Part shown: piece by piece, positions 8,793-62,518 of the stretch
How the letters are laid out: each line of letters starts with the position of its first letter
Position numbering within the stretch: the first letter of the stretch is position 1
Assembly: GCA_002269645.1 (NCBI GenBank)
Contig: NIVC01002896.1
Coordinates: 1-64,000, forward strand
Direction: 5' to 3'
Origin: Macrostomum lignano
Taxonomy: Eukaryota
Length of the DNA stretch: 64,000 nucleotides
Program-made: the position numbers and the translations under genes
Notes under the pieces: generated by a model
Told to the model about the DNA's origin: nothing
What the model saw: only the letters and a program-made list of their open reading frames with translations
The model's database searches: none

Positions 8793-9024
8793 TCACTGCG
8801 AAATGGTGACAACTTCGCGCCCGGAGCCCCGGACCAGCAGTACCCGCTCCAGGCCCTCGGTCAGGGCTTCCAGGTACTCCATGTAGTGAAAGTCGCGCGT
8901 CGGATCCGGCACCGCGTTGGGCCCCGGCATGTTGAGCACAACTAGAGAGGCGCCTGCCGATTTCTTCTTGAGAATCTCGTTCAGCTGCACGGCGCTGTGC
9001 ATGCGGCGGAGAATCTGCGTGTCC
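8793..9024 (-). CDS. kcc: KCC last coding exon
   Basis: TTCCTCCAG acceptor; [12 protein letters not shown]...VVTISQ-stop. Confidence 0.95.
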
Positions 9025-15000: not shown

Positions 15001-18000
15001 CGTCAACATGGAGGACAGAATGCGTCAACATGGAGGACAGAATGCGTCAGCACGGAGGGGGATCGGGCAATCCAGGTTCAGTGCTCACCAGACGACCAGG
15101 CGGTGGGGAATGACATCATGACGCAGTTGTGCTCCAGGCCTCCTAGGCCGGCGCTCTGCACCAGGTGCTCGATTCCCTGAACCACATCCTGGGAAACGAT
15201 CATCTTGACAATGCCTTTCACCCGTTTAGCCTTCATCACGGAGCGCAGAGCGGCCTTGGCATCGTCCAGGTCAGCGTAATGATCGTAGACCATGCCCTGG
15301 ATGACAGAGCCAACGATGGTGAGGCCGCGGCCAGCCTTCAGCTGCGACAGAAGATCCAGCAGACAGACGTGCTTCGGCTTCAAGTTGTCCCCGGCCTCCA
15401 GCAGCACAAGTAGCTGGGGCCGCCAGTTCTTAGCGTGAGGCGGCTTCTCGTCAACAGACAGCAGGGCTTTCTTGGCCGCCGACAACTGCAGGCCGTTGGT
15501 GGCGTCGCCCCACTCAATGGTGGCGCCCTTCCACTGCACGTAGAAGTAGATGGCCACAGCGATGAACATTGCCAGGATAGCGAAGTACCAGCTGGACATG
15601 AACATCAGGCCCAGGCAGAACAGGAAGCCCAGGCTTGAGGTTGTCCAGTGGTAATACCGGAAGCTGGGCCGCCAGCTGGGCTCGCTCAGCAGGCTGTTCA
15701 AACAGGTGGCCATGTTGACGAAGCCGTAGCACATGAGAAAGAACTGGGATATCAGCGGCGTCAGTGCGTCGATGTCGGCGATCAGGACTCCGGCGGCGCA
15801 CATCGACAGCGTGAGGAGCTGGGCTCGGAATGGCTCGCCGCGAGCGGTGGTGACCTTGAAGGGCGCCAGCAAGCCAATGACGCTGTCGGCAGCGATAGCC
15901 TGGAACAGGCGGGGAGCACCTGCGGGAAATTTGGGATGCGGATTGCAAGCGACAGAGTGCGGGATCTGCTTTTGCTGTCGATTTTCGATCCCTGTAGATC
16001 TCCCCTATAATTCACTCTTCTTCTTCCGCCTCTAACTCCCTCCTCTTGCGCCCTCTAATCCTCTTCCGCCTTCTCCCTCCTCTTGCGCCCTCTAATCCTC
16101 TTCCGCTCTCTCCCTCCTCTTCCGCCCTCTCCCTCCTCTTGCGCCCTCTCCTTCCGCTTCCGCCTTCTCCCTCCTCTTCCGCCTTCTCCCTCCTCTTCCG
16201 CCTTCTCCTTCCTCTTCCGCCTTCTCCCTCCTCTTCCGCCCTCTCCCTCCTCTTCCGCCTTCTCCCTCCTCCTCCGCCCTCTCCCTCCTCTTCCGCCTTC
16301 TCCCTCCTCTTCCGCCTTCTCCTTCCTCTTCCGCCTTCTCCCTCCTCTTCCGCCCTCTCCCTCCTCTTCCGCCTTCTCCTTCCTCTTCCGCCCTCTCCCT
16401 CCTCTTCCGCCTTCTCCTTCATCTTCCGCCCCTCCCTCCTCTTCCACTCTCTCCTTCCTCTTCCGCCCTCTCCTTCATCTTCCGCCTTCTCCTTCCTCTT
16501 CCGCCCTCTCCCTCCTCTTCCGCCCTCTCCCTCCTCTTCCGCCCTCTCCCTCCTCTTCCGCCCTCTCCCTCCTCTTCCGCCCTCTCCTTCATCTTCCGCC
16601 CTGTCCTTCATCTTCCGCCCTCTCCTTCATCTTCCGCCCTCTCCTTCATCTTCCGCCCTCTCCTTCATCTTCCGCCCTCTCCTTCATCTTCCGCCCTCTC
16701 CTTCATCTTCCGCCCTCTCCTTCATCTTCCGCCCTCTCCTTCATCTTCCGCCCTCTCCTTCATCTTCCGCCCTCTCCTTCATCTTCCGCCCTCTCCCTCC
16801 TCTTCCGCCCTCTCCCTCCTCTTCCGCCCTCTCCCTCCTCTTCCGCCCCTCCCTCCTCTTCCGCCCTCTCCTTCATCTTCCGCCCTCTCCTTCATCTTCC
16901 GCCCTCTCCTTCATCTTCCGCCCTCTCCTTCATCTTCCGCCCTCTCCTTCATCTTCCGCCCTCTCCCTCCTCTTGCGCCCTCTCCTTCCGCTTCCGCCTT
17001 CTAAATCTCACCAGTAAGGCTCTGCAAGCCGGCTCCAACAGTGGACAGGCAGGAGCCAATCAAAATGAGCCACTCGGTTGGCCAGGCCATCAACGCTGCC
17101 ACCAATTTGCCGTCCAGACTGACGCCAAATCTGAAATTTTACACGGGGTAACAGCGGATCTTAGCACTGCATACAGTGAAAAACTGCCCCGGTTAAAAAC
17201 AGTTCAAACTCACTTGTCGCGAAGAAGGCGGCCGTCAACGTTAGCGGCAAATAGCAGGGTTGAGGCGATGTCTGGCGTGGGGATTGTCGCGCAATTGCGT
17301 TGCTTTGATTCAAGGAAAATAGTTTCTCTTTAAAGTACCTACGAAAGAGAAAGAGCATAAACGTTCTTTAGAGTGCCTCTGCCTTTAGAGTGCTCTTCAA
17401 TACAGAGTGACTCTCCATTCAAATTGTGGCCCTCCATTCAAAGTGACCCTCCATTTAGAGTGACCCTCTGTTCAGAGTGGCCCTCCATTCAGAGTAACCC
17501 TCCATTCAGAGTGACGCTCCATTCAGAGTGACGCTCCATTTATAGTGACCCTCCATGCAGAGTGACCCTCTGTTCAGAGTGACCCTGTATTCAGAGTGAC
17601 CCTCCATGCAGAGTGACCCTCTGTTCAGAGTGACCCTCTGTTCAGAGTGACCCTCTGTTCAGAGTGACCCTGTATTCAGAGTGACCCTCTATTCAGAGTG
17701 ACCCTCTATTCAGAGTGACCCTCCATTTAGAGTGACCCTCCATGCAGAGTGACCCTCTATTCAGAGTGACCCTCTGTTCAGAGTGACCCTGTATTCAGAG
17801 TGACCCTCCATACAGAGTGACCCTCTTTTTAGAGTGACCCTCTGTTCAGAGTGACCCTGTATTCAGAGTGACCCTGTATTCAGAGTGACCCTCTATTCAG
17901 AGTGACCCTCCATTTAGAGTGACCCTCCACTCAGAGTGACCCTCAATTCAGAGTGACCCTCCATTCAGAGTGACCCTCCATTCAGAGTGACCCTCCATTC

Positions 18001-21000
18001 AGAGTGACCCTCAATTCAGAGTGACCCTCCATTCAGAGTGACCCTCCATTCAGAGTGACCCTCCAAACCGAGTGACCCTCAATTCAGAGTGACCCTCCAT
18101 TCAGAGTGACCCTCCATTCAGAGTGACCCTTAATTCAGAGTGACCCTCCATTCAGAGTGACCCTCCATTCAGAGTGACCCTCCATTCAGAGTGACCCTCC
18201 ATTCAGAGTGACCCTTCATTCAGAGTGACCCTCTATTCAGAGTGACCCTCTGTTCAGAGTGACCCTCTATTCAGAGTGACCCTCCATGCAGAGTGACCCT
18301 CCATGCAGAGTGACCCTCTATTCAGAGTGACCCTCCATTCAGACCCAGGCTCCGCAAAGGATACAGACAGCAGAGGTGACCAGCACGGCGCCTACGGTGC
18401 CCCGCGGAATGGAAATGTGCGGCTTAGCCAAGTCGCCGCTCCTGTTGGAGCCGGCCATGATGCCCGTGACGCTGGGAAAGTAGATCCCGATCAGCATGAT
18501 CAGCGAGGTGCTAATATCCGCCATCGACGGCTCCTCGCCCCGGGCCTTGTCGCCCAGCTCCGGCGGATTGGAGTCGTACAGGTAGCCAGCGTCGGTGTAA
18601 TGCGACGGCAAGAAGTTCTTGACGAAGACGCCGCTGGCGATGCCGGGAATGCCGGGGAACGCGGACGCTTCGTTGCGCATGAAATACTGGCAGGCTTCCG
18701 AGTCCGTCTGGTTTTGGCAGTAGAGCCGGTAGATCGGCCCGCTGGGGTCTTTAGTGCACTGCATGGTGCCATTCTCCATCAGGTCTTTGGTGCGCAGCAG
18801 CCGGCTGCCCAGGGCGCACATCCTCGGGCTGCTGCTGTCGTTGGACACGAAGAAGCCGATGGTCAGGCTGAGGATTGAGATGAGCACGCAGGCAAGCGAG
18901 ATGGGCGCCACCTTGGACACGAAGCGAATGCCGATCATCACGCAGATGCCCATCAGTGCCAGCAGTATCAGGCCGTAGATTCTTGCGTTGTTGAAGAAGT
19001 CTTCAAAGAGGGCCGCTTGAGGCACAATGTACTTCTGCAGAAGCAGGGTTTAGCGATGTTGTTGTTGTCGGCGATATGTACATCAGTCACGTGATTTGTG
19101 CCTTTACTTAGCAACTACGCTCGTAAAAGGCTTTTTAATTAGCGATGGCCCTCTCCTACATCTGTTTTCTACCCCTCTACTTCTCTACTTCTGCCTCTCT
19201 ACTTCTCTGCCTTCCTGTCTGTCTCTCTACTTCTCTCCATTCCTGTCTGTCTCTCTACTTCTCTCCCTTCCTGTCTGTCTCTCTATTTCTCTCCCTTCCT
19301 GTCTGTCTCTCTACTTCTCTCCCTTCTTGTCTGCCTCTCTACTTCTCTGCCTTCCTGTCTGTCTCTCTACTTCTCTCCCTTCCTGTCTGTCTCTCTACTT
19401 CTCTCCCTTCCTGTCTGCCCCTCTACTTCTCTCCCTTCCTGTCTGCCTCTCTACTTCTCTGTCTCCCTCTCTCTCTCTCTCTATTTCTCTTCCAGCCAGG
19501 ATCTTTTATTAGGGGCGGGGTCCGTATTTTTGGAGTGGACACCACCAGCGTCTGGGGCAGCAGCAATACGGTTGCCACCTACTTTTGCCAGCCGATAACG
19601 GGCCTTTCTTTCCCTGCGTGACAGCGTAAAGTTGGCGGCTGAGAGGTTATCTTATCTTCTTCAACTTCTCTGACTCTACTTCTCCTACTCTACTTCTTCC
19701 ACTCAACCTCTCACAATCTACTTCAACTCTACTTGAAGTCGATTCTTCTCCTACTCGATTTCTCGTAGTCTACTTCTCATTCACTACTCCTCTCGTTTCC
19801 TGTCTCCCTCTCTCCCTCCCTTCTCCCTCCCTGCTTCCCTGTCTACTTATCAGCCAGTCTCCCCGGTACTCCTCCCAGCAGCAAAGCAATTCCCCCAACT
19901 CACGATGGCAATCTCGATCGCGCCCACAACGTACATAGCGGCAGCCACTGTGTTGGCCAAATAGAACAGAACGCCAACAGCGGAGCCGAACTCAGGGCCG
20001 AGCGAGCGCGATATCATGAAATAGGAGCCGCCGGCTGGAACCCGGCCATTCGTGGCGATGGCGGACATGGAGATGGCAGTCAGCAGAGTGCAGGTGCAGC
20101 ATGCCAGCACGATCATGAGGGTCTGGAAGCCGCCAGCGACGCCGACAATCCAGCCGAGTCTGATGAACAGCAGCACGCCGAAGATGTTCTGAATGCAGGG
20201 AAAGAACACGCCCAGGATGGTGCCGAGGTTCGCGGCTTTCTGCTCCTCGCCGTGCGCCTCTCCACTAGTCGGGTTGATGCCGGCGCGGTACTGGATGAGC
20301 TGGGTGAGCACCGAGGCCACCCGAGGCCTGCCGGTGTACTCCTCCTGCAGGGCGGACGTGTCTGTCTCAGTATGCGTCTTAGTGTGTCTCAGTATGTGTC
20401 TTAGTGTGTCTCAGTGTGTTTTTGTGTCTCTCAGTATGTGTCTTAGTGTGTCTCAGTATATGTCTTAGTGTGTCTCAGTTTGTGTCTTAGTGTGTGTCAG
20501 GATGTGTCTTAGTGTGTCTCAGGATGTGTCTTATGTGTCTCAGTATGTGTCTTAGTGTGTCTCAGGATGTGTCTTAATGTGTCTCAGGATGTGTCTTAAT
20601 GTGTCTCAGTATGTGTCTTATTGTGTCTCAGTATGTGTCTTAGTGTGTCTCAGTATGTGTCTTAGTGTGTCTCAGGATGTGTCTTTGTGTGTCTCAGGAT
20701 GTGTCTTAATGTGTCTCAATATGTGTCTTAGTGTGTCTCAGGATGTGTCTTAATGTGTCTCAGGATGTGTCTTAATGTGTCTCAGTATGTGTCTTATTGT
20801 GTCTCAGTATGTGTCTTAGTGTGTCTCAGTATGTGCCTTAGTGTGTCTCAGGATGTGTCTTTGTGTGTCTCAGTTTGTGTCTTAGTCTGTCTCAGGATGT
20901 GTCTTATTGTGTCTCAGTATGTGTCTTAGTGTGTCTCAGTATGTGCCTTAGTGTGTCTCAGGATGTGTCTTTGTGTGTCTCAGTTACTGCCTTAGTGTCT

Positions 21001-40745: not shown

Positions 40746-42482
40746 TCAACTAGCTGCTACAAACTGTAGCTCGCATGCATGATGCCGAATCCAGAAGCTG
40801 GGTTTTATTGCATTTGATGTGCAAGAATTGTCAATACAAAAGTCGAATATAGCGCAGTCACGAATGAACCTTTTAGATTTATTCAGGTAGTCGCCTGAAC
40901 GTTAAAACTCAAAGTTCTCTTATACAGAATTTCTAGACGCTGGGTTATGTCAGCTATTTTTTCTTACATTTATACCCAGCGACGATTGAAAAAACAGTGA
41001 AAGACAAACAACCTACTTCACTTTATCTAGGATACATTTAAAAATAATATTTAACCTAATTGAGATAAGGTACTACAAATGCAAGACTTTTAAATTGGTA
41101 GCTATTCTATATTTTTCAAGCGTTACTTTTTGTTTGTCTACTGTCATGCGGAAATTAAGAATTATTTGAATTGCACTGTCCAATATAAAATGCCCAGCTT
41201 CAAATTTCGCCCAAGCCCAAGGGTGCTAGCAAGTTGCTATAGCTTAAGACAAATTTCTCACAACGCCGAAAATCCTTGAAAAGTCCTCAAGACCAAAATA
41301 TCAGATCCTTGAGAAGGGCATTGCAAAGATTTTCGGCGTTGCATCATATGAGGGATGCTTCAGTCTTTTATAATCTAGACTAGACTATCTCATGATGAAG
41401 ATGCATTTTAATAAAAAAATTTTAGAAATTTACCTACAGATACTATACGGTTATGATATAGTGTTATTTGATTTTACAAAATTAATTTATGTAATTAACA
41501 GGATCCTTATGCTTGATTTATAATTGATTTATAATTGTTTTAAATCAATATTTTAGACAATTCAGGGAAAGGTAGTTAGGTTTAGGTAGAAGTAAAATGT
41601 TTTGAATTTTATGGAATATCTACTTTCTTTTGAAAACAAAATAGCTCACTTAGTCTTATAGCAACCCAATATGTAACAAGTATAATTTAAAATAAATCTT
41701 TACTTCTAATCTATTTTTTTTTGCAAAAAATATCAATATACAACTTATATATTAGCCTGGCATGATAAAATAGGCTAGGTTTTCTGGTTAAGAAGAAATG
41801 GAAATTATTATTATTAAGCATAGGCCCTATAAATGATTTAAATATATTGATTTAAAATGATTTAAAACTAAAAGCATTTTATTCATCTGTAAGGCTAAGG
41901 ATGCCTAGGCTTTATAATAAATCAGTGCCATTATGCTTATATTCAATTTATATTACCATACATAAGGACCTTGTATGATAGCCATTGTCAAACTGCAATC
42001 CTTTATTTCTATATTTTAATTTCTATAATTAAGGTCCATTTTTATATATATTAATAAAGAAAAATTACATGATTAAAATATTTTATAAAATAAAATAATT
42101 AATCATATTTTAATGATTTTGACTTCCATTTTTTTATTTTACTAGAAACTATAAAATACTACCATTAGATGATTTTATAGGGCAAAATTTGATGAAAAAT
42201 TGAAGATTTTCCACTTTGCTTTTCAGTTAGTTGCAAGGCCAGTGCAAGTCCAGAGGTTGTATTCTTATATCTAAAGCTGAGTGGACTGATTAACTGGCCA
42301 GGTTTAATGCATATCTCCTCCTAGTATATATATTTATTGTCATATCGCCATATTGCCGTCATATTGCCATAGTATATATAAATGTATATAGAAGTATAAC
42401 ACAGAATATATCTGTTAGTCAAATCACGCATAGTTTATCTATGATCCAATGCTTATACAGGTACTTAATCTCAATTGCAGCC

Positions 42483-42920
42483 ATGCCAAGCTCGCCGCAC
42501 ACCCAGACAGTGCAGCTGCAGCTGGAGAAAGTGCCCGAGCGGGACAGCCACGGCCAGCGGGTCATGGTGAAGGACTCGGCCGGCGGCCTGGCGCCCAAGC
42601 TGCTCACTGGATTCCGCTTCGCTGGCGGCATCGACCAGGACCGGCAGTACTGCCCCTACGGCTATCCAGACTGTGGCATCTATGTCACCCACGTGTACAG
42701 CGGCAGTCCGGCGGAGAAGGCCGGCCTGCGGGTGCACGACAAGATCCTGCAGGTGAATGGCAACAATCTGGCCTTCTTGGGCCACGCCCAGGTTGCCGCG
42801 CTACTCAACCGGGAGACCCAGCTGAGCCTGTTGGTGCACCGCGGCTTCCAGAGATTCACCACGCAGTTGAGCGACTCGCTGGGTTCGGAGGCCAGGGTCT
42901 CCGCCTCGGTGCTGCTTTGA
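42483..42920 (+). CDS. TAX1BP3: Single-PDZ protein, TIP-1/TAX1BP3-like, 145 aa, intronless CDS
   Basis: GFRFAGGIDQD...GIYVTHV...GSPAEKAGLRVHDKILQVNG matches the TIP-1 signature GFSIGGGIDQD. TTGCAG acceptor 2 nt before ATG. Confidence 0.82.
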   Translation: MPSSPHTQTVQLQLEKVPERDSHGQRVMVKDSAGGLAPKLLTGFRFAGGIDQDRQYCPYGYPDCGIYVTHVYSGSPAEKAGLRVHDKILQVNGNNLAFLGHAQVAALLNRETQLSLLVHRGFQRFTTQLSDSLGSEARVSASVLL

Positions 42921-44905: not shown

Positions 44906-45292
44906 CTAGACAAAATCATCATCATCATGATCAGGATCGCGCTGATCATCGTTATCATCAGCATCAGCCGTCAGATCAATAGACTCGACAGCTGCCTGTC
45001 TTTGTCGGCGTTTCTTCGCCGCGGGCTGCCCGTTGGATGCCTCACTGGATGCAGCGCCGTCGCCGTCCCTGGCCGGCAGCGGACAGATCAGGTCGCCCCG
45101 GCCGAGCCGCCGAGCCCCCCAGGCCAGGTAGGGCACCGTGGCGAACGGAGTAAAATGAAAGTCCTCGGTCAGGTAGCCGCGAAGCAGCAGTTCGGCCAGG
45201 CCGGCCTCCACTGCCTGGCGGAGCGGCGCGCCGGGCGGCAGGGCGGAGCGGGTGCGGGCGCCCAGACGGCCGGAGGACAGCGAATCGGCCAC
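44906..45292 (-). CDS. RECQL: RECQ1 last exon
   Basis: TGCCAG acceptor; VADSL...[14 protein letters not shown]...acidic tail. Confidence 0.88.
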   Translation of the reverse strand: MADSLSSGRLGARTRSALPPGAPLRQAVEAGLAELLLRGYLTEDFHFTPFATVPYLAWGARRLGRGDLICPLPARDGDGAASSEASNGQPAAKKRRQRQAAVESIDLTADADDNDDQRDPDHDDDDFV

Positions 45293-46192
45293 CTGGCAGT
45301 GCGGGGGCGGTGGTGAACCCATGGCGGCAATTGCAATCAGCATTCTGCGTGGCTGCCAGCCACGTACATTCTCAGCGGCGCTGGATAAATGTACATTAAC
45401 GGCTGCACTGTTCTACTATGCCTTAAGTGGCCCATCTAGTCATTTCAGTACGAGTACCTGTGGATCGTGAGTGAAAATCAATCGGAGCTCCAATAATTCA
45501 CTCTGCTACGATAGGGTAGCAGCTCTATACCACTTGTACATACTTTCATACTGAGCGAACCAACCTTCATCGCAGTCAGCCGTTTATTGCCCCCAGCCTC
45601 GGCCAGCAGGTCGGCCATCAGCTGGGCCAGCTGGGCCAGATCCCACGGCTGGGCGGGCGGTGCCGGGCCGCGGCACCAGTCGCACATGGCCTGACAGGCG
45701 ACTGGCTCAACAACCGGCTGCATCGATTCGCTTGACGGCGCCTCCGCCTCAGCCTCCAGGTGCCTGGCCAGCAGGCGCCGACGGCAGTCCCTGGCCGTGC
45801 AGTAGCGCAGCATCTCGTACAGCTTAGCCAGGCCGGTCCGCTCGGCGAACACGATCGGACTGAGGCGGAACACGTCCGCCAGCCGATAGAACAGCAGGCA
45901 CTGGGCTGGCTGACCGTCCCGGCCGGCCCGCCCAGACTCCTGATAGTAGGTTTCCGGGCTCTTGCTCAGCGTGTGGTGAATCACAAACCGAACGTCTGGC
46001 TGTTCCAACGGGTGGGGGCGGATGATGGAAGGGTTGCTTGACTGGCTGACGCAATATGATTGAAAGGCTCTGGGATTTCACAAGCATACATTTAAGATCT
46101 AGACGGTAGACAGAAGACAACCGGACACTAAGGCGGACAGACAGACAGAGACAGGCAGACAGACAGGCAGACAGACAGACAGACAGACAGAA

Positions 46193-46241
<49 letters not shown>

Positions 46242-49200
46242 TACCTTATCGATGCCCATCCCAAAAGCCATGGTGGCCACCACCACGCGAACCCGGCCAG
46301 CCACCCAGTCGGTGTGGGCGGCTGCGCGCAGCCGGGAGTCCAGGCTGGCGTGGTAGCAGGCGGCGGGCAGGCGGGCGCGCTGCCGCAGGTGGTCGGTGAG
46401 CTGCTCGGCCTCGCGCTGGGTGCAGCAGTACACAATGCCCGACTGGCCTGCGAACTCGCCGCGAATCAGTTCGGCAACTGCCTGCAGCGGGGTGCGGGGA
46501 CTGGCTGGATTAGCTACTGAGATGGCTGGATTAGCTACTGAGATGGCTGGATTAGCTACTGAGATGGCTGGATTAGCTACTGAGATGGCCAGATTAGCTA
46601 CTGAGATGACCGGATTAGCTACTGAGACGGCCGGATTAGCTACTGAGATGACCGGATTAGCTACTGAGACGGCTGGATTAGCTACTGAGATGGCTGGTTA
46701 GCTATTTAGATGACCGGATTAGCTACTGAGACGGCCGGATTAGCTACTGAGATGGCCGGGTTAGCTACTGAGATGGCTAATTAGCTACTGAGATGGCGGG
46801 ATTAGCTACTGAGATGGCTGGTTAGCTATTTAGATGACCGGATTAGCTACTGAGACGGCCGGATTAGCTACTGAGATGACCGGATTAGCTACTGAGACGG
46901 CTGGATTAGCTACTGAGATGGCTGGTTAGCTATTTAGATGACCGGATTAGCTACTGAGACGGCTGGATTAGCTACTGAGATGGCTGGTTAGCTACTGAGA
47001 TGGCTGGTTAGCTACTGAGATGGCTGGTTAGCTACTGAGATGGCTGGTTAGCTATTTAGATGACCGGATTAGCTACTGAGACGGCCGGATTATCTACTGA
47101 GATGGCTGGATTAGCTACAGAGATGGCCGGATTAGCTACTGAGATGGCTGGTTAGCTATTTAGATGACCGGATTAGCTACTGAGACGGCCGGATTAGCTA
47201 CTGAGATGGCCGGATTAGCTATTTAGATGACCGGATTAGCTACTAAGACGGCCGGATTAGCTACTGAGACGGCCGGATTAGCTACTGAGATGGCTGGTTA
47301 GCTATTTAGATGACCGGATTAGCTACTGAGACGGCCGGATTAGCTACTGAGATGGCCGGATTAGCTACTGAGATGGCTGGATTAGCTATTTAGATGACTG
47401 GATTAGCTACTGAGATGGCTGGTTAGCTATTTAGATGACCGGATTAGCTACTGAGACGGCCGGATTAGCTACTGGGGTGCCCGCATTAGCCACTGGGATA
47501 AAAGGCAAATACCCACCTGCATAGAGTCAGCAGGCTTGGGCAGCACTCTGTAGAGCAGGTTGGGACGGTCGAAGCCGCCCCTGAGCAGCAGGCAGTCGCT
47601 GCTCAAGCCGAGCATGTCGCGAACATCGGCCAGCACCCTGTCGGAGGCGGTGGCGGTCAAGCCGATGGTCGGCACGCCGGGAAACTGGCGCCTCAGCACG
47701 CCGAGAAATTTGTAATCCGGCCGGAAGTCGTGACCCCACTGGCTGCAGCAGTGCACCTCGTCAATAGCCACTCGGGACAGCTGGCCGGCCGAGTGCAGCT
47801 TCTCAAGGCCGGCCATCAGGCGGCGGCTTTTGGCCAGCCGCTCTGGGGTGGCGTACAGAAGCTTCAACCGGCCGGCAGCCGCCTCATCCAGGGCGCGCTT
47901 CGTGTCCGACTAAGGAGATGGAATGGGGGAACAGGTGGGTACGCTGAGATGGGAGACGGGAACAGGGATCAAAGGGGATAATCAGATGGGATCAGGGATC
48001 ACAGGGGATAATCAGATGGGATCAGGGATCACAGGATATAGTCAGATGGGATTTGGGATCACAGGGGATAATCAGATGGGATCAGGAATCACAGGGGATA
48101 ATCAGATGGGATCAGGGATCACAGGGGATAATCAGATGGGATCAGGGATCACAGGAAATAATCAGATGGAATCAGGGATCAGGGATCACGGGGGATAATC
48201 AGATGGGATCTGGGATTACAGGGGATAATCAGATGGGATCAGGGATCACAGGGAATAATCAGATGGGATCAGGGATCACAGGGGATATCAGATGGGATCA
48301 GGGATCACAGGGGATAATCAGATGGGATCAGGGATCACAGGGGATAATCAGATGGGATCAGGAATCACAGGGGATAATCAGATGGGATCAGGGATCACAG
48401 GAAATAATCAGATGGAATCAGGGATCAGGGATCACGGGGGATAATCAGATGGGATCTGGGATTACAGGGGATAATCAGATGGGATCAGGGATCACAGGGA
48501 ATAATCAGATGGGATCAGGGATCACAGGGGATATCAGATGGGATCAGGGATCACAGAGGATCATCAGATGGGATCAGGGATCACAGGGGACAAATCAGAT
48601 GGGATCAGGGATCACAGGGGATCATCAGATGGGATCAGGGATCACAGGGGACAAATCAGATGGGATCAGGGATCACAGGGGATCATCAGATGGGATCAGG
48701 GATCACAGGGGACAAATCAGATGGGATCAGGGATCGCAGGTAATAATCAGATGGGATCTGGGATCACAGGGGATAATCAGATGGGATCAGGGATCACAGG
48801 GGATATCAGATGGGATCAGGGATCACAGGGGATCATCAGATGGGATCAGGGATCACAGGGGACAAATCAGATGGGATCAGGGATCACAGGGGATCATCAG
48901 ATGGGATCAGGGATCACGGGACAAATCAGATGGGATCAGGGATCGCAGGTAATAATCAGATGGGATCTGGGATCAACAGGGGATAATCAGATTGGATCTG
49001 GGATCACAGGGGATAATCAGATGGGATCTGGGATCACAGGGGATCATCATTCTGACCTGAGCGCAGCCAGCGCTGAGCTGTACAGCAGGCACTCCGATCC
49101 GGTCCAGCGCCATGACCTGGTCCTCCATCAGCGACACCAGCGGGGACACGCACAGAGTCAGCCCCCTGCTGAGCAGAGCCGGCAGCTGATAGCAGAGACT

Positions 49201-49572
49201 CTTGCCAGCTCCCGTGGGCATCACCAGCAGGCAGTCCCGTCCGGACATGGTGGCGTTGACCGCCCGCAGCTGCAGTGGCCGGAACTCGGACAGGCCGAAC
49301 CGGTCGCGCAGCAGCTGGCCGGCCTCGGCTGACCAGGCGAAGCCGCCGGCGCTGTCGAACTCGTCCGGCCGAGGCGCCGGCGCCGCGTTGGCGCCAGCGG
49401 CTGCTTCGGCCCTGTCGCGGCGTCGCAGAATAGCGGCTCGCCTGTCACTAATGCGAGCTTTCAATTCCTTCAGTCGGCGAATGTCGGCGCTGAGGCGGGC
49501 GAGCTCGGCGTCCAGCTGCTCGAGCTCGGTTGCCTCGTCCGGGACGGCCTGATGCGGCTGCGGCTGCTGGGC
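44906..49572 (-). CDS. RECQL: RecQ1 ATP-dependent DNA helicase; no genomic start codon found
   Basis: join(49572-49057, 47909-47517, 46481-46245, 45999-45565, 45292-44906) = 1968 nt, all phase 0. Motifs: [48 protein letters not shown], Zn site CRR...CQAMCDWC, winged-helix hairpin [14 protein letters not shown]. Confidence 0.92.
45565..45999 (-). CDS. RECQL: RECQ1 exon 4
   Basis: PDVRFVIHH...[10 protein letters not shown]...Zn-binding. An alternative donor at 45544 is possible. Confidence 0.9.
46135..46238. repeat. (GACA)n intronic microsatellite
   Basis: Begins directly after the GTAAGA donor. Confidence 0.95.
46245..46481 (-). CDS. RECQL: RECQ1 exon 3
   Basis: SGIVYC...YHA...[14 protein letters not shown]. 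Confidence 0.93.
46500..47475. repeat. 21-nt intronic minisatellite (GAGATGGCTGGATTAGCTACT)
   Basis: Fills nearly the whole intron. Confidence 0.95.
47517..47909 (-). CDS. RECQL: RECQ1 exon 2
   Basis: KLLYATPER...[18 protein letters not shown]...LTATA. Confidence 0.95.
47940..49050. repeat. 29-30 nt intronic minisatellite (CAGATGGGATCAGGGATCACAGGGGATAAT)
   Basis: Fills nearly the whole intron; includes block duplications. Confidence 0.95.
49057..49572 (-). CDS. RECQL: RECQ1 exon 1 (opens at an acceptor, no ATG)
   Basis: TATTCCAG|GCC CAG CAG...[12 protein letters not shown]...[11 protein letters not shown]...[15 protein letters not shown]. Confidence 0.9.
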
Positions 49573-49604
49573 CTGGAATAGCAGCGGGAATGCCGGGAGG
49601 CGGT

Positions 49605-49820
49605 TTACAAGCTCGAAACTTCACAAGCTCAACTCAAACTTTACAAGATCGAGGCTTCATGAACTCAAAACTTTACAAGCTCGAGGCTTCATGAACTCAA
49701 AACTTTACAAGCTCGAGGCTTCATGAACTCAAAACTTTACAAGCTCGAGGCTTCATGAACTCAAAACTTTACAAGCTCGAGGCTTCATGAACTCAAAACT
49801 TCACAAGCTCGAGGCTTCAG
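49605..49820. repeat. 32-nt tandem repeat (TTACAAGCTCGAGGCTTCATGAACTCAAAACT)
   Basis: About 6 units just upstream of the RECQ1 acceptor. Confidence 0.92.
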
Positions 49821-50149
49821 AAGCTAAAGTCGTCTATTACCCTTCTAGCAGTCACGTGACTTAACTAATACTTAGTCCATATTTTATTCTAAGCATTTGC
49901 TTCAAAAAAAATTGTACAAGAAAACGAAAATTATTAACTAGCTCAAATTTCTATTGTCAATCAGTGAATTTATTGAGTGATAAAAGCCAGAGCCACGACT
50001 GGCTGCTAGCAGAGCGAATGAAAACAGTGAACTGTCAATTAGTGCGTTTCATTCTACTACAACTATCTTAGCATTGTGACCACAGGGATTTTCAATCCTT
50101 GACAATTTATTACTATCAAATGAAACTAACAAGTATATCTGGGAGAGAA

Positions 50150-50685
50150 TGACCGCCCACAGATGGACTGGGGAGGGGTGACAGCCCACAGATGGACTAG
50201 GGGAGGGGTGACTGCCCTCAGATGGACTAGGGGAGGGGTGACCGCCCACAGATGGACTAGGGGAGGGGTGACTGCCCTCAGATGGACTAGGGGAGGGGTG
50301 ACTGCCCTCAGATGGACTAGGGGAGGGGTGACTGCCCTCAGATGGACTAGGGGAGGGGTGACCGCCCACAGATGGACTGGGGAGGGGTGACAGCCCACAG
50401 ATGGACTGGGGAGGGGTGACAGCCCACAGATGGACTAGGGGAGGGGTGACTGCCCTCAGATGGACTGGGGGAGGGGTGACTGCCCTCAGATGGACTAGGG
50501 GAGGGGGTGACAGCCCACAGATGGACTGGGGGAGGGGTGACAGCCCTCAGATGGACTAGGGGAGGGGTGACAGCCCTCAGATGGACTAGGGGAGGGGTGA
50601 CTGCCCTCAGATGGACTGGGGAGGGGTGACTGCCCTCAGATGGACTGGGGAGGGGTGACAGCCCACAGATGGACTGGGGGAGGAC
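50150..50685. repeat. 30-nt G-rich minisatellite (CAGATGGACTAGGGGAGGGGTGACTGCCCT)
   Basis: About 18 units. Confidence 0.93.
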
Positions 50686-51224
50686 AGCACAAGGATGAAA
50701 TCGACTCTTGCTGAAAATTATGCACGAAAATACTGGAGTTCGAGTTAACAGGGCAGTAAAAAACGTGAGTAGTAGAACATGCATCTGAGCAGAATTTTCA
50801 TATAAAATTAGTCGCAAATACATTACATGTATGCAATTACAAAACCATGGTTTTACAGTGCAATCAACAAAGCGCAATAAATCTTTAAAAAACGCATGCA
50901 AATCTAATCACCGTAACTAGGCAAGAGCAGTTACAATAATTATATACTACTCAGTAAATACTCGAGTAGCACTCTGAATACACTTATCAATCATTGCATC
51001 ATCAAATCAATAATTTATAACTAAAGTTTGGCCGCCAAAATGGAAGCCTTGATATAAATTTCAATTGCTATCAAACAGAAGATGCATATACACTACTAAG
51101 ACTGGTATATACTACTTTTCTAATTGACTGGAAAAAATTATTTAGAGGCACATTGTTCAGTTCAGTTTACATATATCTGGCATTCTTAGCATTAGCCTAG
51201 TAGCTCTTAACATTATTAGCTAAG

Positions 51225-51615
51225 GTCATTTATAGATAGTTTAAGGTCACTAGTTGAGGTCATAGCCAAAGGTCACTAGTGGAGGTCATATAGATAGTCT
51301 AAGGCCATTAGCTCAGGTCATATAGATAGCCTAGGGTCATTAGCTCAGGTCACATAGATAGTCTAAGGTCACTAGCTCAGGTCATATAGATAAGTCTAAG
51401 GTCACTAGCTCAGGTCATATAGATAAGTCTAAGGTCACTAGCTCAGGTCATATAGATAAGTCTAAGGTCACTAGCTCAGGTCATATAGATAAGTCTAAGG
51501 TCACTAGCTCAGGTCATATAGATAAGTCTAAGGTCACTAGCTCAGGTCATATAGATAGTCTAAGGTCACTAGATCAGGTCATGTAGATAGCCTAAGGTCA
51601 ACTAGCTCAGGTTAT
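51225..51615. repeat. 32-33 nt minisatellite (AGGTCATATAGATAAGTCTAAGGTCACTAGCTC)
   Basis: About 11 units downstream of the CCDC22 stop. Confidence 0.93.
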
Positions 51616-51747
51616 GCATTGTCTTCAAAGCCCCTTCATTGCTGCTCATGCCAGAAAACTCAAACACAAGAACTCAAATGAAATCACATGTTAGAGTAGG
51701 CAGGCACAACATATCGGCACCATAAAGAACAGCCAGTTGCCCCAACT

Positions 51748-52052
51748 CTATCCAGACGCGGCAGCAGCAGCGGCAGCCGCCTTCAAAGCTTTGTTAGCCC
51801 GTTTCAATTCGGCCAAATCTGCCGCCAGCTTGTCGGCGTTCTCCTCCATCCGGCGTCGACGCTCCACAAGGATGTGATCTTCCAGGTCGATGGTCTCCTT
51901 CTGCAGAGTCGATTTGTCCTCTTCACAGCGCAGAACGGCGTCGCAGTGCTGGTGCAGGCCGGCTAGCAGTTTGTACAGCCGCTTGCCAGTGGGATCAGAA
52001 GCTCCAGAGAATACGGCCTCGTCCGCCACGCGATAGGTGCGGTCCAGTTTGC
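51748..52052 (-). CDS. CCDC22: CCDC22 exon 3
   Basis: GKLDRTYRVADEAVF...YKLLAGLHQHC. Confidence 0.92.
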
Positions 52053-55000
52053 CTGTTTTGATTGGGAATTGAATTTTTTATCCCCTGATAGTGTAGCGAT
52101 TTTTGTCCCCTGTGACTACGGATTTTAATCCCCTGTGACTGTAGGGATCTTATTCCCCAAGTGACTGTAGGGATTTTTATCCCGATGTGACTGTAAGGAT
52201 TTTTATTCCGTGACTGTAGGGATTTTTATCCTCAGTGACTGTAGGGATTTTATCTTTTTTATCCCCAGTGACTGTAAGGATTTTTATCCCCTGTGACTAT
52301 AGGGATTTTTATCCCCTGTGACTATAGGAATTTTTATCCCCTGTGACTATAGGGATTTTTATCCCCTGTGATTATAGGGATTTTCATTTCGTGACTGTGG
52401 CCATTTTTATCCCGGCCCTGTGACTGTAGGGATTTTATCTTTTTTATCCCCAGTGACTGTAAGGACTTTTATCCCCTGTGACTATAGGGATTTTCATCCC
52501 CTGTGACTATAGGGATTTTCATTTCGTGACTGTGGCCATTTTTATCCCGGCCCTGTGACTGTAGGCATTTTCATCCCGTGACTGTAGGGATTTTAATCCT
52601 CTGAGACTGTAGGGATTTTAATCCCCTGAGACTGTAGGGATTTGCATCCCCTGAGACTGTAGGGATTTTCATTCCCTGAGATTGTAGGGATTTTAATCCC
52701 CTGAGACTGGAGCAATTTTCATCCCCTGTGACTATAGGGATTTTCAACCCTGGGATTCTGGGGATTCACCATTGTTATCCCTTGTTAATGCTTCGATTTT
52801 TATCCAATGTGACTGCAGGGATTTATATCCCCTGGAATTCTTGGGATTTACCAATTTTATCCCACCGGAATCCTGGGATTTTTGTAATTTTTTTGGATGA
52901 TTAGGATAATTGTCCCTTAGAGAATATTAGGACTTTCTAATAGAATAGGCTACTTCTTTATCCCATATTCCTTGAAAGAATCAAATTCGACAACCTCCCC
53001 CATCTCCAGCACCAACCAGTGAGCCGGTTAATCTCCTTCTGCGCCGCCCGCAGTTCGTCGCTAATCCGGCCCAGCTCGGCTCGCTGCTTCTTCAAATTGG
53101 CGGCAAAATCAAGCAGGCCGCGGGTCAGCTCCCGCCTGCGCGTCAGGCTCGGGTCGCCCTCGGCCAGGTGGCGGGCCAGCCGGTCGGCCGCCCGCTGCAG
53201 CAGCTCCCGTTCGGCCTCGCGGGCGCGCAGATCCTCCCGGCAGGCGGCCAAGTCGGCGCGGGATTCGCGCAGCTCGTCGAGGCGGCCGGCCAGCACGGAG
53301 CTGCGCGCGTCCAGCTCGGCTTGGAGGGCGCGGCGCTCCGCCTCCATGGCGGCCCGGCGCTCCGCCCACTGCTCGGACTGGCGGGCCAGCTTGGCCTCTT
53401 GAGCAGCCTGGAGCAGTGGCAGGGTTGGCACACAGAATAAACAGTTAAGCTTAAGGAGAATTTCGAATTCGGGATCTGTGCAAAGGAATATCGCATTCGC
53501 ATTGAAGCGAGTTGTCAGGGGCAATCCCCAGGAATTCTCTTAGACCGCCTTAAAATCCTCAGATGACTTGTTGTAAATAGTTTTCCGGCGAAATTCCTTC
53601 TATAATTCCCCCTGACATAGGATTCGTTTTGGTATTCCCCTTGTGATACCCTTTGACATTCATCTTTATGATTCCTACTCAAAGTTTTCCCTGACATGTG
53701 CTTTACTCTAGGATCTATCTGTAGGAATTCCCCTCAGGATTCACCCTGACATGTGCTTCACTATAGGATCCATCCGTAGGAATTCCCTCAGGATTCCCCC
53801 TGACATGTGCTTCACTATAGGATCTATCCGTAGGAATTCCCCTCAGGATTCCCCCTGACACGTGCTTCACTCTAGGATCTATCCGTAGGAATTCCCCCCA
53901 GGATTCCCCCTGACACGTGCTTCACTCTAGGATCTATCCGTAGGAATTCCTCTCAGGATTCTCCCTGACATGTGCTTCACTCTAGAATCTATCCGTAGGA
54001 ATTCCCTCAGGATTCCCCCTGACACGTGCTTCACTCTAGGATCTATCCGTAGGAATTCCTCTCAGGATTCTCTCTGACATGTGCCTCTGCATGAATCTTC
54101 CACTGAAGTACCTGCTGAAGTTAGCCTCACTAAAATCCCCCCCCGAAATTTCCCATAGGTCATAGGGAAGAAGAGGCAAGTGGCAAATCACCTGAGCCTC
54201 CTCCAGCCTGTCCGCCTCCCCAGCGGCCAGCAGCTCTGCCGCTCTCAGCCGGGTCTGAGCCTCCTGCCGCTCCCGCTGCTCCCACGCGTCGGCGGCGGCC
54301 TGCGCCTCGGCAGTTTGAGCGTCCAACTTGGCGGCCCGGCGCTCCGCTTTGCCCGTCGCCTTGGCAACCGCTTCAAGCTCGGCGCGCAGCCGTTCGAGAT
54401 CTTCCCGAGCCCGAGCTGCTCGCGCTTCGGCAGACTCGGTGGCCTCCGTCTCCGCAGATTTGAGCAGCTGCTGGTGCTCGTCGTTTGCGGACTTTTTCCG
54501 CGTCGGCTTCGGCGGCTTTGGCGGCGGCGGAGGTCGACGCCCGCCGGCAGCCTGTTTGACGGCGTCGGCAACAGCCTGGCGAAGCGAGCGCGGCAGCAAC
54601 TCGACGTCGACGCCGACACCACCGGACTCCGTGTCGGCTGTCGATGGTCTGGCGCCAATGGCGGCCTCCTCCTCGCGCCGCTCGGCCAGCAGCAGCGAAG
54701 CCGTCCATGACAGCAGCGAGGGGCCCGGCGCTGCCGAGGCCGCCCAACAGCCCGGCCGGCCGGCCGGACCGCAGAAAAACGGCAGGCCGCGCTGGAACTG
54801 CCGCACAGATGGCGGAATTTCAGAACCGGCCGCGGCCGGAGCGGCCCGGTTTGGCACGCACGGATAGACGGTGCGGAACCCGCAGGGGCCGCCGCCGCCG
54901 CCCTCAAAGCACAGGCCGCCCTGGCGGAGGGCGAGGCCGTCCGGCCTGCAGCAGGCGGGCAGCCAAGGCGCGGCCAGCTGGGCCCGGCACCTGGCCGCGA

Positions 55001-57712: not shown

Positions 57713-60700
57713 ATGTCAAAACTATGGAACGAGAATCTGTGGGTGCGTACAATTAATGTTTCGTTTCTATTTCTATAAATCATTGAGGCTTCCTTTGACT
57801 TCGTTTGTCTACTAAAAATATTACAAATTCCTTTTCTGGCTTTGCTCGACAACTCTAAAGGCAAGGCTAGAAGAGCAATATTGAGTAGTTAAGAAGTTAC
57901 AAGAAAATAGTAATTAACATGAAAAGTTACTTTTTAATTTTAGTGGTGTTGAATTTTCGCTATAACTTTTTACCATTACTCTTCCAAGCTAATCGATGTG
58001 AATAGTTTTAATTTATCCTCTTAATTGTTCCCATTTCAGGATACATTTAATCCTCACGTTTACAACTTCAACAAATTTAACTTCGAATTCTTAAAGACTT
58101 TCACTGAGTTTTTAAAGCGCCGCTGCAAGATAGAGGAAACCTACTGCAAAGAGCTTCGGTAAGAATAAAACACGCTTGTCCATGAGTTAAAATAACGGTT
58201 TTTACTACTTGATGTGGCGATGATGTAGCATGTATTCAACCGATATTCCACCGTTGTCACTATTTATTATTTCCTCCCGCAAACGCTGATTGCAATATAT
58301 AAATTTCAGAAAGCTTTGCTGCGATTGTCGTCCAAAAGACTACAACTCCAACTCAAAGGAATATGCTAGGTAAGTGTTTGCTCCTTGCTTTGCAGAGTTT
58401 ATAGGTGCTTGCCGTCGGGAGAACAAGGTGGCGCGGATGTTCTTTTGAGTTTGTCTGAGTTTAGGGATTGAGTATGAGAATACTGGGAATTAGATTCAAG
58501 AGCGCAATCCAAGGTAACCTAACAGGTTCTAATCCCCACTGCAAGTCTAACACGTATGTATCAATCGTCAGGTTTTCAGTCCAGGCTGCCTTTGACTCAG
58601 CTCTAGGAGAGCTGATCTCAATGGCGGATCAGCGCAACGATCTGCTGATTCAAAAGCTACGCGACACTCGGCACCAGCTACAGAAGGAGCTGACGGAGCT
58701 GCGCGATTCGGCCGCTAAAGCAGAGCGCCGCATCGCCGAGAAGAGCCGCGACCTCGAGACTAGCCGAAAAAAGGTGACGACCGCGCGCTCCCAGTACCAT
58801 CGGGCGCATGCCGACCAGGCCAAAGCGACCACTCCTGAGGCGCAGGAGCAGCGACGGCAGCAGTGCGCTGCCAAACGCACAGTCTACGAAGGTACGAACA
58901 CATTTAACTTGAACTTAACACATTTGACTATCTTCTAGCAGTCTGCGCTCCATCCCCGTTGGGAGGCTACATGGAAAGGAATATTTTTTAATAAACCACC
59001 TGTTGCTTTTGACCTTGCAGAGCCACTATTGGAAATACCATTTAAGAAAAAGGTATTTAAAGCAGAAAAGCATTTTCCCTGAATGCCAGCTACATGTATC
59101 TAGCCTAAGGTATCAGCATCTCCTTTGAGCTTTGGCTCAAAGCATTTGAGCAGCCCCCATAAGCCACAGCATTTGAGTCTTGACATGTCAGAAATCCCCC
59201 CAAAACCGCAACTTATTTATACATTTGAAGATCCTCTGTTTAAAGCGCAGATGGCTTCCGAACGCATAAATAGAAATCTAATTGTTCCAAACACTCAAAA
59301 CGATTTAATCAATCATAGATTTTTTCTCGTAGTATCATTAATCAACCAAACATTTTAAAAGCATGCACGTTTCTAGAGCAATCCCTGTCAGCCCTTTTAC
59401 ATAGAACCGTCGACATGCGCGCTATTGTATGAAGAGCAAGAGATTTAGAAAAACTTTTAAGAAATAAGTGTGCGACAGCTCAACCGGAATTCATTAATGA
59501 GATCCAAACAGTGAAGCAAAAACACTAAGTAATTTTCCTAGCTATTTTGCTACAAAATGCTCAGTGCTAGTTTATCATTATCATACTTTATCATACGATC
59601 GTAAAACCCAACACTTGCTTCATTCGAGTATCAGACCATTCTTATATTTCTTTATATTAGAAGCAAGGGGCTGTGTGCACCATGGCGCACTTGAAGCGAC
59701 ATTGTTACACAACCGGCGAGAGGTATTACTGCCCCTTCCGACGACTCCCCTGTACACAGTCATACGCACAGGCTCACACTCACACAGGATTGTACAGCGG
59801 CCCTAACTTTATTTATCGTTAGGCATTTGCACTTCACTGTGCCTTGGGAGTTGGATGTCAAGGGCGTTAATTGCACGAGCAGAGCCAAGCCGAGATTCCA
59901 ATTTAGCCCCAAATCAATGTGACCTGGTCTGGGCCGCTGGGCTACGGCCACCCAGTATAAGCCCCTCTTATTTATCCAGACTTTTAGTGTAGCTACATTA
60001 AGTCTTTTCTAATATTTATGCTTTTTTTACACAGGAGCCCTCGGTGAATTCAACGAACTGCAGCGGCAGTACTACCACTCCGATCTACTCGAGCAGCTCA
60101 ACCGATTGGAGATGCTCCAGCGCAATTTTTGCACCGTCAGCCGCAACGCCATGGTGGATTGCGCCGATGCCGAGACCGCCACCCTGGCTGAGCAGACTCG
60201 CTCCGCCACCGGCATGTCGGCCTCGGTTAATCGCATCGATGCTGAGGCGGATGCTGCGACGTTTGTTCGCATCACAGCCAGCGACGAGCCCTTGCCAAAC
60301 GACATGGTCCTGGAGGAACCGGCCACTGCAGCCGCTGGGACTCTGACCCGGCCGGTTGTAACGGTGAGAGAAACCAACATCGTCTTTAAAGACCGATTGT
60401 TACATTTAGATATCCAACAAATTTTACTAATGCGTCTCTATTTTTTACTATTGCGCAGTATCGTACAGTACTGTCAGGTGTAGCCTCCAGACCAAACCAG
60501 CTACAACATTTCGGACCTGTCGAATACAAATGCCGAGACATCCCATCTTTAGGCTCTCTGTCGGGGAATTCCTATGGCAGTCTGACTGGTCCCAGCATTA
60601 CTTTGGGCTCCATTCTTAGAGCTTTTCAGTCGTTTCTCCTTCGTTTAGACTCAAGCAAATGGCTTCCTAAGGCAACAAGTTAAATGTTACACGAACTGTC

Positions 60701-62518
60701 AGAAGCTGATTCTCTCTTATACTTTTTATAACATGATTAAAACGTCACTCAGGATCGAATCGGTAGCAAAAATTCAGCTGCTCCAAATCTAGCGTACTTC
60801 TACTTTGCTATGCTAAATTCATGGGTATCTGTTATAGTAGCTTGCCCCAATCGATCCAATACATGCATTGAACCAATGTTACGCCAGGCCTCAAAGTCGC
60901 TGCCTGCTGCAGGAGCTTCCAACGCTGCTCCGACGGGAAACCCGACCGATGCTGGCGATTCCGTTGACGGAGCTGAGAAGCTGAAGAGGAAAATGTAACG
61001 CTACACTATTGCATTTTACTGTTGCGAGTGTATAATTTTTAATAGACTTCTGCTTCCATTAGTATACATTTTTCATTAATTTCTCCACAGAACCGGCCTA
61101 AAGACTCTTTTTGAGGCTTACAAAGCAAATCCAAGTCTTGGGGACGCTTCAGTTGTGGAATCCGAGCTGCGTCAGGCCATGAGCGCGTCTGACCAGATCG
61201 GTGGTACGCTTATTAATCGACGGCAGCCCTTCCGTGACGAATTCGAAACCAATGAATTTGATGTCGACGCTGTCTACAGCACCGTTGACGAAAACGAGGA
61301 AAATCCGGTTGTAATACGGAACGGTAAATTATGCTTGGTTGTTGCTCCAGATGCCACTGTTGGCTAAGGGTAGATGCACTGCTGATATTGATACCGGATG
61401 CACTGACGTTAATCCCAAATGTACTGCTGATGTTGATATTGGATGCACTGACGTTAATCCCAAATGCATTATTGATGCTGACCCCGGATGCACTGACGTT
61501 AATCCCAAATGTACTGCTGATGTTGATACTGGATGCACTGACGTTAATCCCAAATGCATTATTGATGCTGACCCGGATGCACTGACGTTAATCCCAAATG
61601 TACTGCTGATGTTGATATTGGATGCACTGACGTTAATCCCAAATGCATTATTGATGCTGACCCGGATGCACTGACGTTAATCCCAAATGTACTGCTGATG
61701 TTGATACTGGATGCACTGACGTTAATCCCAAATGCATTATTGATGCTGACCCCGGATGCACTGACGTTAATCCCAAATGTACTGCTGATGTTGATACCGG
61801 ATGCACTGACGTTAATCCCAAATGCACTATTGATGCTGACCCCGGATGCACTGACGTTAATCCCAAATGTACTGCTGATGTTGATACTGGATGCACTGAC
61901 GTTAATCCCAAATGCATTATTGATGCTGATCCCGGATGCACTGATATTAATCCCGTACGCAATGCAGATGTTGATCCTGGGTGCACTGAGCTAGATCCCG
62001 GATTACATGGCCTGATATAGCTTTAATATAGCCAACTATATTAAAGCTGTATCAGTTCGTTATGTGATTTAATCTCAAAATACATCGTAGTTTCTAATTG
62101 ACAAAAAATTGCAGACGCGAATAAAGCTGCCATACATGTAAGCTATGAAGCTCATGCTGCTATGTCACCTCCTGAGACTCCTGCGAGACCACCTCTTCCG
62201 GCGCCTGATGAGAGCCCGGCGCCTGATGAGAACCCTGCGCCTGATGAGAACCCTGCGCCTGCAACAGCTGATCCAGGACGTCCTATGTCCATTGCGCCAG
62301 CAGTAGATGAGCCACCGGAGCCGGCCTATGACACAATTGTCTCGCTGCTTTACGACTTCAAAGACGACGCCCAGTCCAGCGTCCTGTCAGTGACAGCTGG
62401 CGAGCAGGTCCTACTGCTCAGATGGGACGATGAATGGTCTCTAGTGTCTCGACTGGACAAGTCCGAGTCTGGCTACGTGCCAACCGCTTATATCTCTTCG
62501 GAGACGCCTTCGGAATAG
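57713..62518 (+). CDS. Cip4: F-BAR / HR1 / SH3 protein of the CIP4-FBP17-TOCA1 family, 533 aa
   Basis: join(57713-57742, 58040-58158, 58310-58369, 58572-58891, 60035-60363, 60888-60994, 61091-61323, 62115-62518) = 1602 nt, phase-consistent. MSKLWNENLW-DTF (cf. MSWGTELWDQF); RRCKIEETYCKELR; FNELQRQYY; YKANPSLGD; SH3 LYDF...W...GYVPTAYI. Subfamily assignment judged by eye. Confidence 0.8.
58572..58891 (+). CDS. Cip4: F-BAR gene exon 4
   Basis: FSVQAAFDSALGELISMADQR... Confidence 0.85.
59735..59955 (-). mobile_element. tRNA-derived SINE family 2 copy (intronic)
   Basis: Head GGTGGCCGTAGCCCAGCGG, CACATTGATTTGGGGCT, CCCAAGGCACAG...GGGCCGCTGTACA. Confidence 0.65.
60035..60363 (+). CDS. Cip4: F-BAR gene exon 5
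   Basis: ALGEFNELQRQYYHSDL...IDAEADAATFV. Confidence 0.85.
61370..61995. repeat. Higher-order tandem repeat of alternating 44-45 nt A/B subunits
   Basis: GGATGCACTGACGTTAATCCCAAATG followed alternately by TACTGCTGATGTTGATACT or CATTATTGATGCTGACCC(C). Confidence 0.93.
62115..62518 (+). CDS. Cip4: F-BAR gene last exon (Pro-rich linker + SH3)
   Basis: TTGCAG acceptor in frame; PAPDEN repeats; SH3; TAG stop. Confidence 0.85.

Follow-up and report, generated by a model that had tools for sequence, protein, structure and literature searches.

The RECQ1 gene of Macrostomum lignano lacks a genomic start codon and probably takes its initiator AUG from the spliced leader

We analysed a stretch of 64,000 nucleotides of Macrostomum lignano DNA (contig NIVC01002896.1; hereafter the window) and found a minus-strand RECQ1 gene whose coding frame opens at a putative splice acceptor and lacks a genomic start codon. 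Judging from the sequence, we consider it probable (about 0.86) that the spliced leader (SL) is joined at position 49572 and that RECQ1 translation starts on the SL AUG. We infer trans-splicing at exactly 49572 from the sequence together with the boundaries of public annotations. RECQ1 pre-mRNA would be trans-spliced to the SL after TTCCAG, with the exon starting at 49572, and fusion of the 35-nt SL, which ends in AUG, to GCC CAG CAG would create AUG-GCC-CAG..., the beginning of a 656-codon open reading frame (ORF) with G at +4. A scanning ribosome would initiate at the SL AUG and produce full-length RECQ1, and trans-splicing would also take out the outron with its ATG-bearing tandem repeats.

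The gene comprises five phase-0 exons between 49572 and 44906, which encode 655 codons plus a stop and are separated by junctions that are all phase 0 and all GT-AG:

49057-49572, minus strand: RECQ1 exon 1, 172 codons, phase 0, beginning AQQPQPHQ..., with the FRPLQ motif and Walker A.
47517-47909, minus strand: RECQ1 exon 2, donor CAG/GTGGGT.
46245-46481, minus strand: RECQ1 exon 3, donor AAG/GTAAGA.
45565-45999, minus strand: RECQ1 exon 4, donor AAG/GTTGGT.
44906-45292, minus strand: RECQ1 exon 5, carrying the stop codon TAG at 44908-44906.

From 49572 the frame is open for all 172 codons of exon 1, up to the donor CAG/GTCAGA at 49057. A search of protein collections showed that UniProt A0A1I8H5J3 (Macrostomum lignano) is 100% identical to the exon 1 product, and the next matches, at 41-50% identity, were proteins from across animals named ATP-dependent DNA helicase Q1. 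The predicted protein contains the Pfam domains DEAD (PF00270), Helicase_C (PF00271) and RecQ_Zn_bind (PF16124), and its best solved structures are those of human RECQ1 (2v1x, 4u7d). On the basis of the identity to A0A1I8H5J3, the helicase Q1 top matches and the Pfam domains, we identify the gene as RECQ1 of M. lignano. The UniProt isoform A0A1I8H5J3 retains intron 4 (45565 donor), and within exon 2 (47909 acceptor) two internal alternative acceptors, GCAQ/RALDE and GCAQ/AAAGRL, are represented in A0A1I8H8M9 and A0A1I8H1K5.

The RECQ1 frame is closed a short distance 5' of the acceptor, and its first genomic ATG lies well inside the coding sequence:

49621-49623, minus strand: in-frame TGA closing the RECQ1 frame, 48 nt (16 codons) 5' of the acceptor; the same stop is present in a paralogous locus (L001, below).
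49246-49248, minus strand: first in-frame genomic ATG, RECQ1 codon 109, 3' of the conserved FRPLQ and just before Walker A.

There is no ATG between the in-frame TGA (49623-49621) and the acceptor. By itself, the absence of ATG from exon 1 is not statistically significant and carries little weight: when mononucleotides were shuffled, the first 324 nt were free of ATG with a probability of about 0.1, and when the codon order was shuffled, with one of about 0.5. The weight rests on coding sequence 5' of the first genomic ATG that the alignments indicate is conserved and essential. Sequences of human RECQ1 crystal structures align from query residue 72-78 on, across F-x-WS...FRPLQ, and RECQ1 residues ~16-50, a candidate coiled-coil region, align with the N termini of orthologues. 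In a full HMMER scan, residues 10-22 aligned onto residues 3-13 of many orthologues, so exon 1 extends slightly more N-terminal than the Met1 of most of them. The alignment to one orthologue (P0128) is collinear and starts with M. lignano residue 19 on its residue 21. Because FRPLQ, F-x-WS and the N-terminal region all align to RECQ1 structures or orthologues, coding must begin 5' of Met109. With the SL Met included, the distance from Met1 to FRPxQ would be 97 residues, compared with an orthologue median of 87 (range 78-154, n=41). As far as these alignments can tell, no N-terminal coding exon of RECQ1 is missing; the initiator codon alone is.

These results agree in the main with the first-pass annotation of this DNA, which had described a phase-0 frame of 656 codons including the stop that starts from GCC CAG CAG, as in our own model of 655 amino acids plus stop. 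It had called the product close to full RECQ1 length; counted from the SL Met, the N-terminal length is typical of orthologues. The first in-frame ATG, which it had placed deep in the helicase core, is codon 109, after FRPLQ. It had also put an in-frame stop about 60 nt upstream; the stop is there, and the distance is really 48 nt.

The junction at which the frame opens has the features of an M. lignano trans-splice acceptor:

49573-49605, minus strand: putative SL trans-splice acceptor, a pyrimidine-rich tract plus TTCCAG (49578-49573).

Its AG occupies 49574-49573 in the context ...ctgctaTTCCAG/GCC, also given as ...cgctgctattccag/GCC CAG CAG and, more widely on the minus strand, as ...gtaaaccgcctcccggcattcccgctgctattccag/GCC CAG CAG CCG CAG CCG CAT..., and 49572 is the first exon base. 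The pyrimidine fraction (0.7) is similar to that of the cis acceptors of RECQ1, and TTCCAG matches [T/C]TNCAG, the top trans-acceptor motif published for this species, in which about 30% of genes are SL trans-spliced (PMC8629364). M. lignano has a single SL of 35 nt, CGGTCTCTTACTGCGAAGACTCAATTTATTGCATG, whose 3' end, ...TTATTGCATG, is ATG (PMC8629364). In M. cliftonense and M. hystrix the SL is conserved, including the ATG at its end, which their genome paper describes as a start codon for translation (PMC10468722). Since the 3' part of the SL is CTCAATTTATTGCATG, the predicted SL-RECQ1 junction reads ...TTATTGCATG/GCCCAGCAGCCGCAGCCGCAT. A search of the window for the SL itself, with up to 3 mismatches allowed, gave 0 matches, and no SL RNA gene or Rfam family was found there.

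Joining the published SL to the exons gave the 656-codon ORF, MAQQPQ..., with ...UUGC-AUG-GCC-CAG... at the fusion and no stop between. Two points of the first-pass annotation can be answered: it had left the 3' end of the species' SL to be checked, and the published SL does end in ATG; and its proposal that SL-AUG plus GCC would read M-A-Q-Q-P in frame, with G at +4, is what the joined sequence gives. The SL has no second ATG; downstream of the SL AUG, whichever frame is read, another ATG is not reached for 327 nt. A scanning ribosome would therefore be expected to start at the SL AUG, as it is the first AUG of the predicted mature mRNA and the sole one within its initial 360 nt. With U at -3, its context is weak.

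Upstream of the acceptor, the same-strand neighbour is CCDC22, identified by the Pfam domain CCDC22_CC in the window and by CCDC22_N and CCDC22_CC in the paralogous locus. The region between the two genes contains the following features:

51748-51750, minus strand: stop codon TAG of CCDC22, the same-strand upstream gene; the 2175-nt intergenic/outron region extends up to it.
49631-49819, minus strand: outron tandem repeat, 32 bp x 5.9, in which an ATG in every unit opens an ORF of 8-11 codons.
49870-49880, minus strand: pseudo micro-exon ATG GAC TAA/GT with an in-frame stop inside; ATGGACTAAGT is identical in L001.

Because each of the 5-6 units of the 32-bp outron repeat holds a short ORF opened by ATG, unspliced RNA would be a poor template for RECQ1. 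The two genes lie 2175 nt apart (49573-51747, minus strand), or 1056 nt when three TRF arrays are subtracted. This is just above the repeat-adjusted operon threshold of 1 kb in M. lignano (PMC8629364), and CCDC22 and RECQ1 may form a two-gene operon. Tandem arrays with units of 21-33 bp fill most introns and intergenic DNA of the window (47954-49049, 47000-47499, 50150-50683, 51217-51612 and 52075-52744), and RECQ1 intron 1 is nearly all a 30-bp x 36 array; this abundance is consistent with the repeat-rich M. lignano genome of the literature. Exons in the window are 60-70% GC.

A second copy of the locus is present in GenBank NIVC01000527.1 (positions 277065-294264; L001), which is about 93% identical to the window through the intergenic region. 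It shares the RECQ1 acceptor, the in-frame stop and the ATG-less structure, and its acceptor region is identical apart from one substitution 21 nt 5' of the junction. That a paralogous locus with this level of identity has the same structure makes an assembly error unlikely. The two RECQ1 copies differ at the C terminus, because the window reads ...DDDDFV followed by TAG (44906-44908) and L001 (11150-11200) has TAT there and continues for 14 more residues (YSSSPDRGKPFYRK).

Public annotations place the 5' end of RECQ1 at or next to this acceptor. A0A1I8H5J3 starts AQQPQ, without Met, exactly at the acceptor. It clusters with GenBank PAA81491.1 ("hypothetical protein BOX15_Mlig020302g1, partial"), derived from NIVC01000527.1, which carries a partial flag and opens with QQPQ, 3 nt past the acceptor; the start at 3 nt rather than 0 nt is probably a coordinate offset. 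The GenBank annotation comes from the Mlig_RNA_3_7 transcriptome, in which TBONE cut units at SL-read peaks and TransDecoder called ORFs (PMC5730564). A transcript that starts at an acceptor and has an ORF open to its first base is what trimming of an SL would produce, and this offers indirect experimental support for trans-splicing here. In L001 the CDS annotated for CCDC22 is open at its 5' end too: it begins 2 nt downstream of a TTACAG acceptor, and the real ATG follows 18 nt later (MEEVDRNVIRQL).

Queries of protein collections with the N terminus or with exons 1-2, and a HMMER scan across all 1.84 billion representatives, found no transcript-derived 5' fragments of M. lignano RECQ1; the N-terminal query also missed the 100%-identical P0001, which we attribute to a word-index limit and not to biology. 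Nor did these searches find a close Macrostomum orthologue of RECQ1, the best non-self match being 53% identical. The supplementary tables of PMC5816591, PMC5730564 and PMC5173321 that could be searched have no entry for RECQL/RECQ1; one table with a TRANSSPLICED column has RECQL5 only. A literature search returned no paper naming the M. lignano RECQ1 gene and no match for 'Mlig020302'.

The initiator codon could in principle be supplied by cis-splicing, from a 5' micro-exon with an in-frame ATG that lies within or beyond the 2.2 kb upstream and is joined at 49572. We went through the 2175 nt for each ATG that runs stop-free and in frame to a phase-0 GT; the listing covers GT donors that follow an in-frame ATG. 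Two kinds of candidate emerged: ATGAAGCCTCGAGCTTGTAAA/GTTTTG, which recurs in each 32-bp repeat unit (49660-49788) and would add MKPRACK, and ATG/GTGCCG at 51723. Micro-exons are difficult to rule out by sequence alone. However, all candidate donors have at most 3/7 consensus matches and none fits the M. lignano donor consensus GT[G/A]AG (PMC8629364), whereas the four real donors of RECQ1 score 5-6/7. Among these candidates, the 2175 nt up to the CCDC22 stop thus yielded no ATG micro-exon whose donor could be used, and the paralogue gave the same result, so the statement of the first-pass annotation that there was no convincing one stands for both loci, each with candidates of at most 3/7. A0A1I8H5J3 and PAA81491.1 are moreover both 5'-open at the acceptor without such an exon, and the orthologue alignments leave no N-terminal coding sequence unaccounted for. 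We regard a cis-spliced micro-exon as very improbable. The first-pass annotation had also worried that a sequencing error might hide an ATG at ATG GAC TAA/GT (49880-49870). We rejected this candidate: the acceptor, the stop and ATGGACTAAGT are all the same in the paralogous locus, and the TAA, being identical there, is genuine rather than a sequencing error.

Joining of the SL at a different acceptor is, in our estimate, less probable still. An AG in phase 0 lies 3' of the in-frame TGA at GAG/CTT, with an exon start at 49611, and its use would retain the SL AUG as initiator and lengthen the protein by 13 residues; 0.2-1.4% of Macrostomum genes have multiple SL sites (PMC10468722). Yet TTCGAG departs from [T/C]TNCAG and lacks a pyrimidine tract, neither annotation begins more than 3 nt from 49572, and 49572 is where the GC content and the homology start. 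We give the lowest probability of all to the remaining readings, that translation starts at Met109 or at a non-AUG codon, or that this copy is a non-functional pseudogene. Met109 is the first in-frame genomic ATG, but a start there would lose the candidate coiled coil and FRPLQ, both of which align to RECQ1 structures or orthologues. M. lignano does have redundant paralogous copies (PMC8629364), a point in favour of these readings; against them, the 655-codon ORF is intact, both copies retain the structure, and exon 1 of the window and of L001 differ at 8 of 516 nt, 5 of the differences being synonymous, whereas the flanks are about 7% divergent. The preferred reading remains that the SL is joined at 49572 and provides the AUG.

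Other genes in the window have genomic start codons near putative acceptors. CCDC22 (minus strand) has a TTACAG/ acceptor, with its AG at 55412-55411, and 19 nt further 3' comes a start codon of its own, the ATG at 55391-55389; an SL AUG joined there would be out of frame in the window copy and would open a long overlapping upstream ORF (uORF). In L001 (460-490) a 1-nt insertion (TCCAG vs TCAG in the window) would make the SL AUG read M-S-S-stop, so the two CCDC22 copies would differ in SL-AUG interference with the real start. A PDZ-domain gene (plus strand, 42474-42485; Pfam PDZ; a 145-aa single-exon CDS in L001) has TTGCAG/ with an ATG 2 nt downstream at 42483-42485, and the SL AUG would lie 5 nt upstream of it, out of frame. 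For a coiled-coil and SH3 gene (plus strand, 58465-62515), we guess from the motif that trans-splicing may occur at a TTTCAG/ acceptor (AG 58578-58579), in which case a uORF of 9 codons would begin with the SL AUG and end before the genomic ATG at 58621-58623. The window also contains a multi-exon gene for an SLC12 cation-chloride cotransporter (8796-20410, minus strand; Pfam AA_permease and SLC12).

The base that would follow the SL AUG (+4) is G at RECQ1 (49572) and T, C and T at 55410, 42481 and 58580, in neighbours with their own ATG, a comparison that is anecdotal at n=4. The first-pass annotation had named the dependence on trans-splicing a possible control point. Because RECQ1 translation would depend entirely on SL addition, one could imagine that regulated trans-splicing, or tuning of SL-AUG recognition through the +4 base, serves as an on/off translational switch in neoblasts for a helicase of genome maintenance; we treat this as a speculation that is highly unlikely to hold.

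For annotation, our analysis implies that M. lignano CDSs that are 5'-partial at trans-acceptors, PAA81491.1 and A0A1I8H5J3 among them, probably need no more than the SL AUG to be complete and are not truncated models. For the design of transgenes or knock-ins, it implies that a genomic RECQ1 fragment to which the SL is not added would not express RECQ1.

Every flatworm SL reported so far has AUG at its 3' end, and Cheng et al. 2006 are cited in PMC12582326 and PMC5832876 as having shown that this AUG is usable as the initiator Met. In Schistosoma mansoni, as summarized in PMC9851317, 28% of trans-spliced transcripts have an in-frame SL AUG, and more than 40 cDNAs depend on it. RECQ1 is thus a further example of a mechanism established in flatworms since 2006 rather than a discovery, and for that reason it opens no new biological question. 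The SL-AUG mRNAs of S. mansoni (Cheng, Cohen, Ndegwa & Davis 2006, J Biol Chem 281:733; cited in PMC9851317, PMC12582326 and PMC5832876) resemble the proposed RECQ1 mRNA in that the SL ends in AUG, the acceptor lies at the first codon of the ORF with the SL AUG in frame, and no genomic AUG stands 5' of essential coding sequence. The present case differs from those mRNAs in concerning a free-living macrostomorph and RECQ1, for which SL-AUG initiation is deduced. With the SL genes of Mlig_3_7 and TBONE (PMC5730564; PMC8629364), RECQ1 would share the single 35-nt SL, and has in common with them a [T/C]TNCAG acceptor, a repeat-rich outron and a same-strand upstream gene with which it may form an operon; those two papers do not discuss SL-AUG-dependent genes, and RECQ1 stands in GenBank as a 5'-partial CDS only. 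The slORFs of nematodes, trypanosomes and Oikopleura (slORFfinder, PMC9851317) likewise receive their start codon from the leader. They are mostly new or alternative ORFs that begin at near-cognate codons, whereas in RECQ1 the codon contributed by the leader would be a canonical AUG, and the ORF that receives it is the conserved main one.
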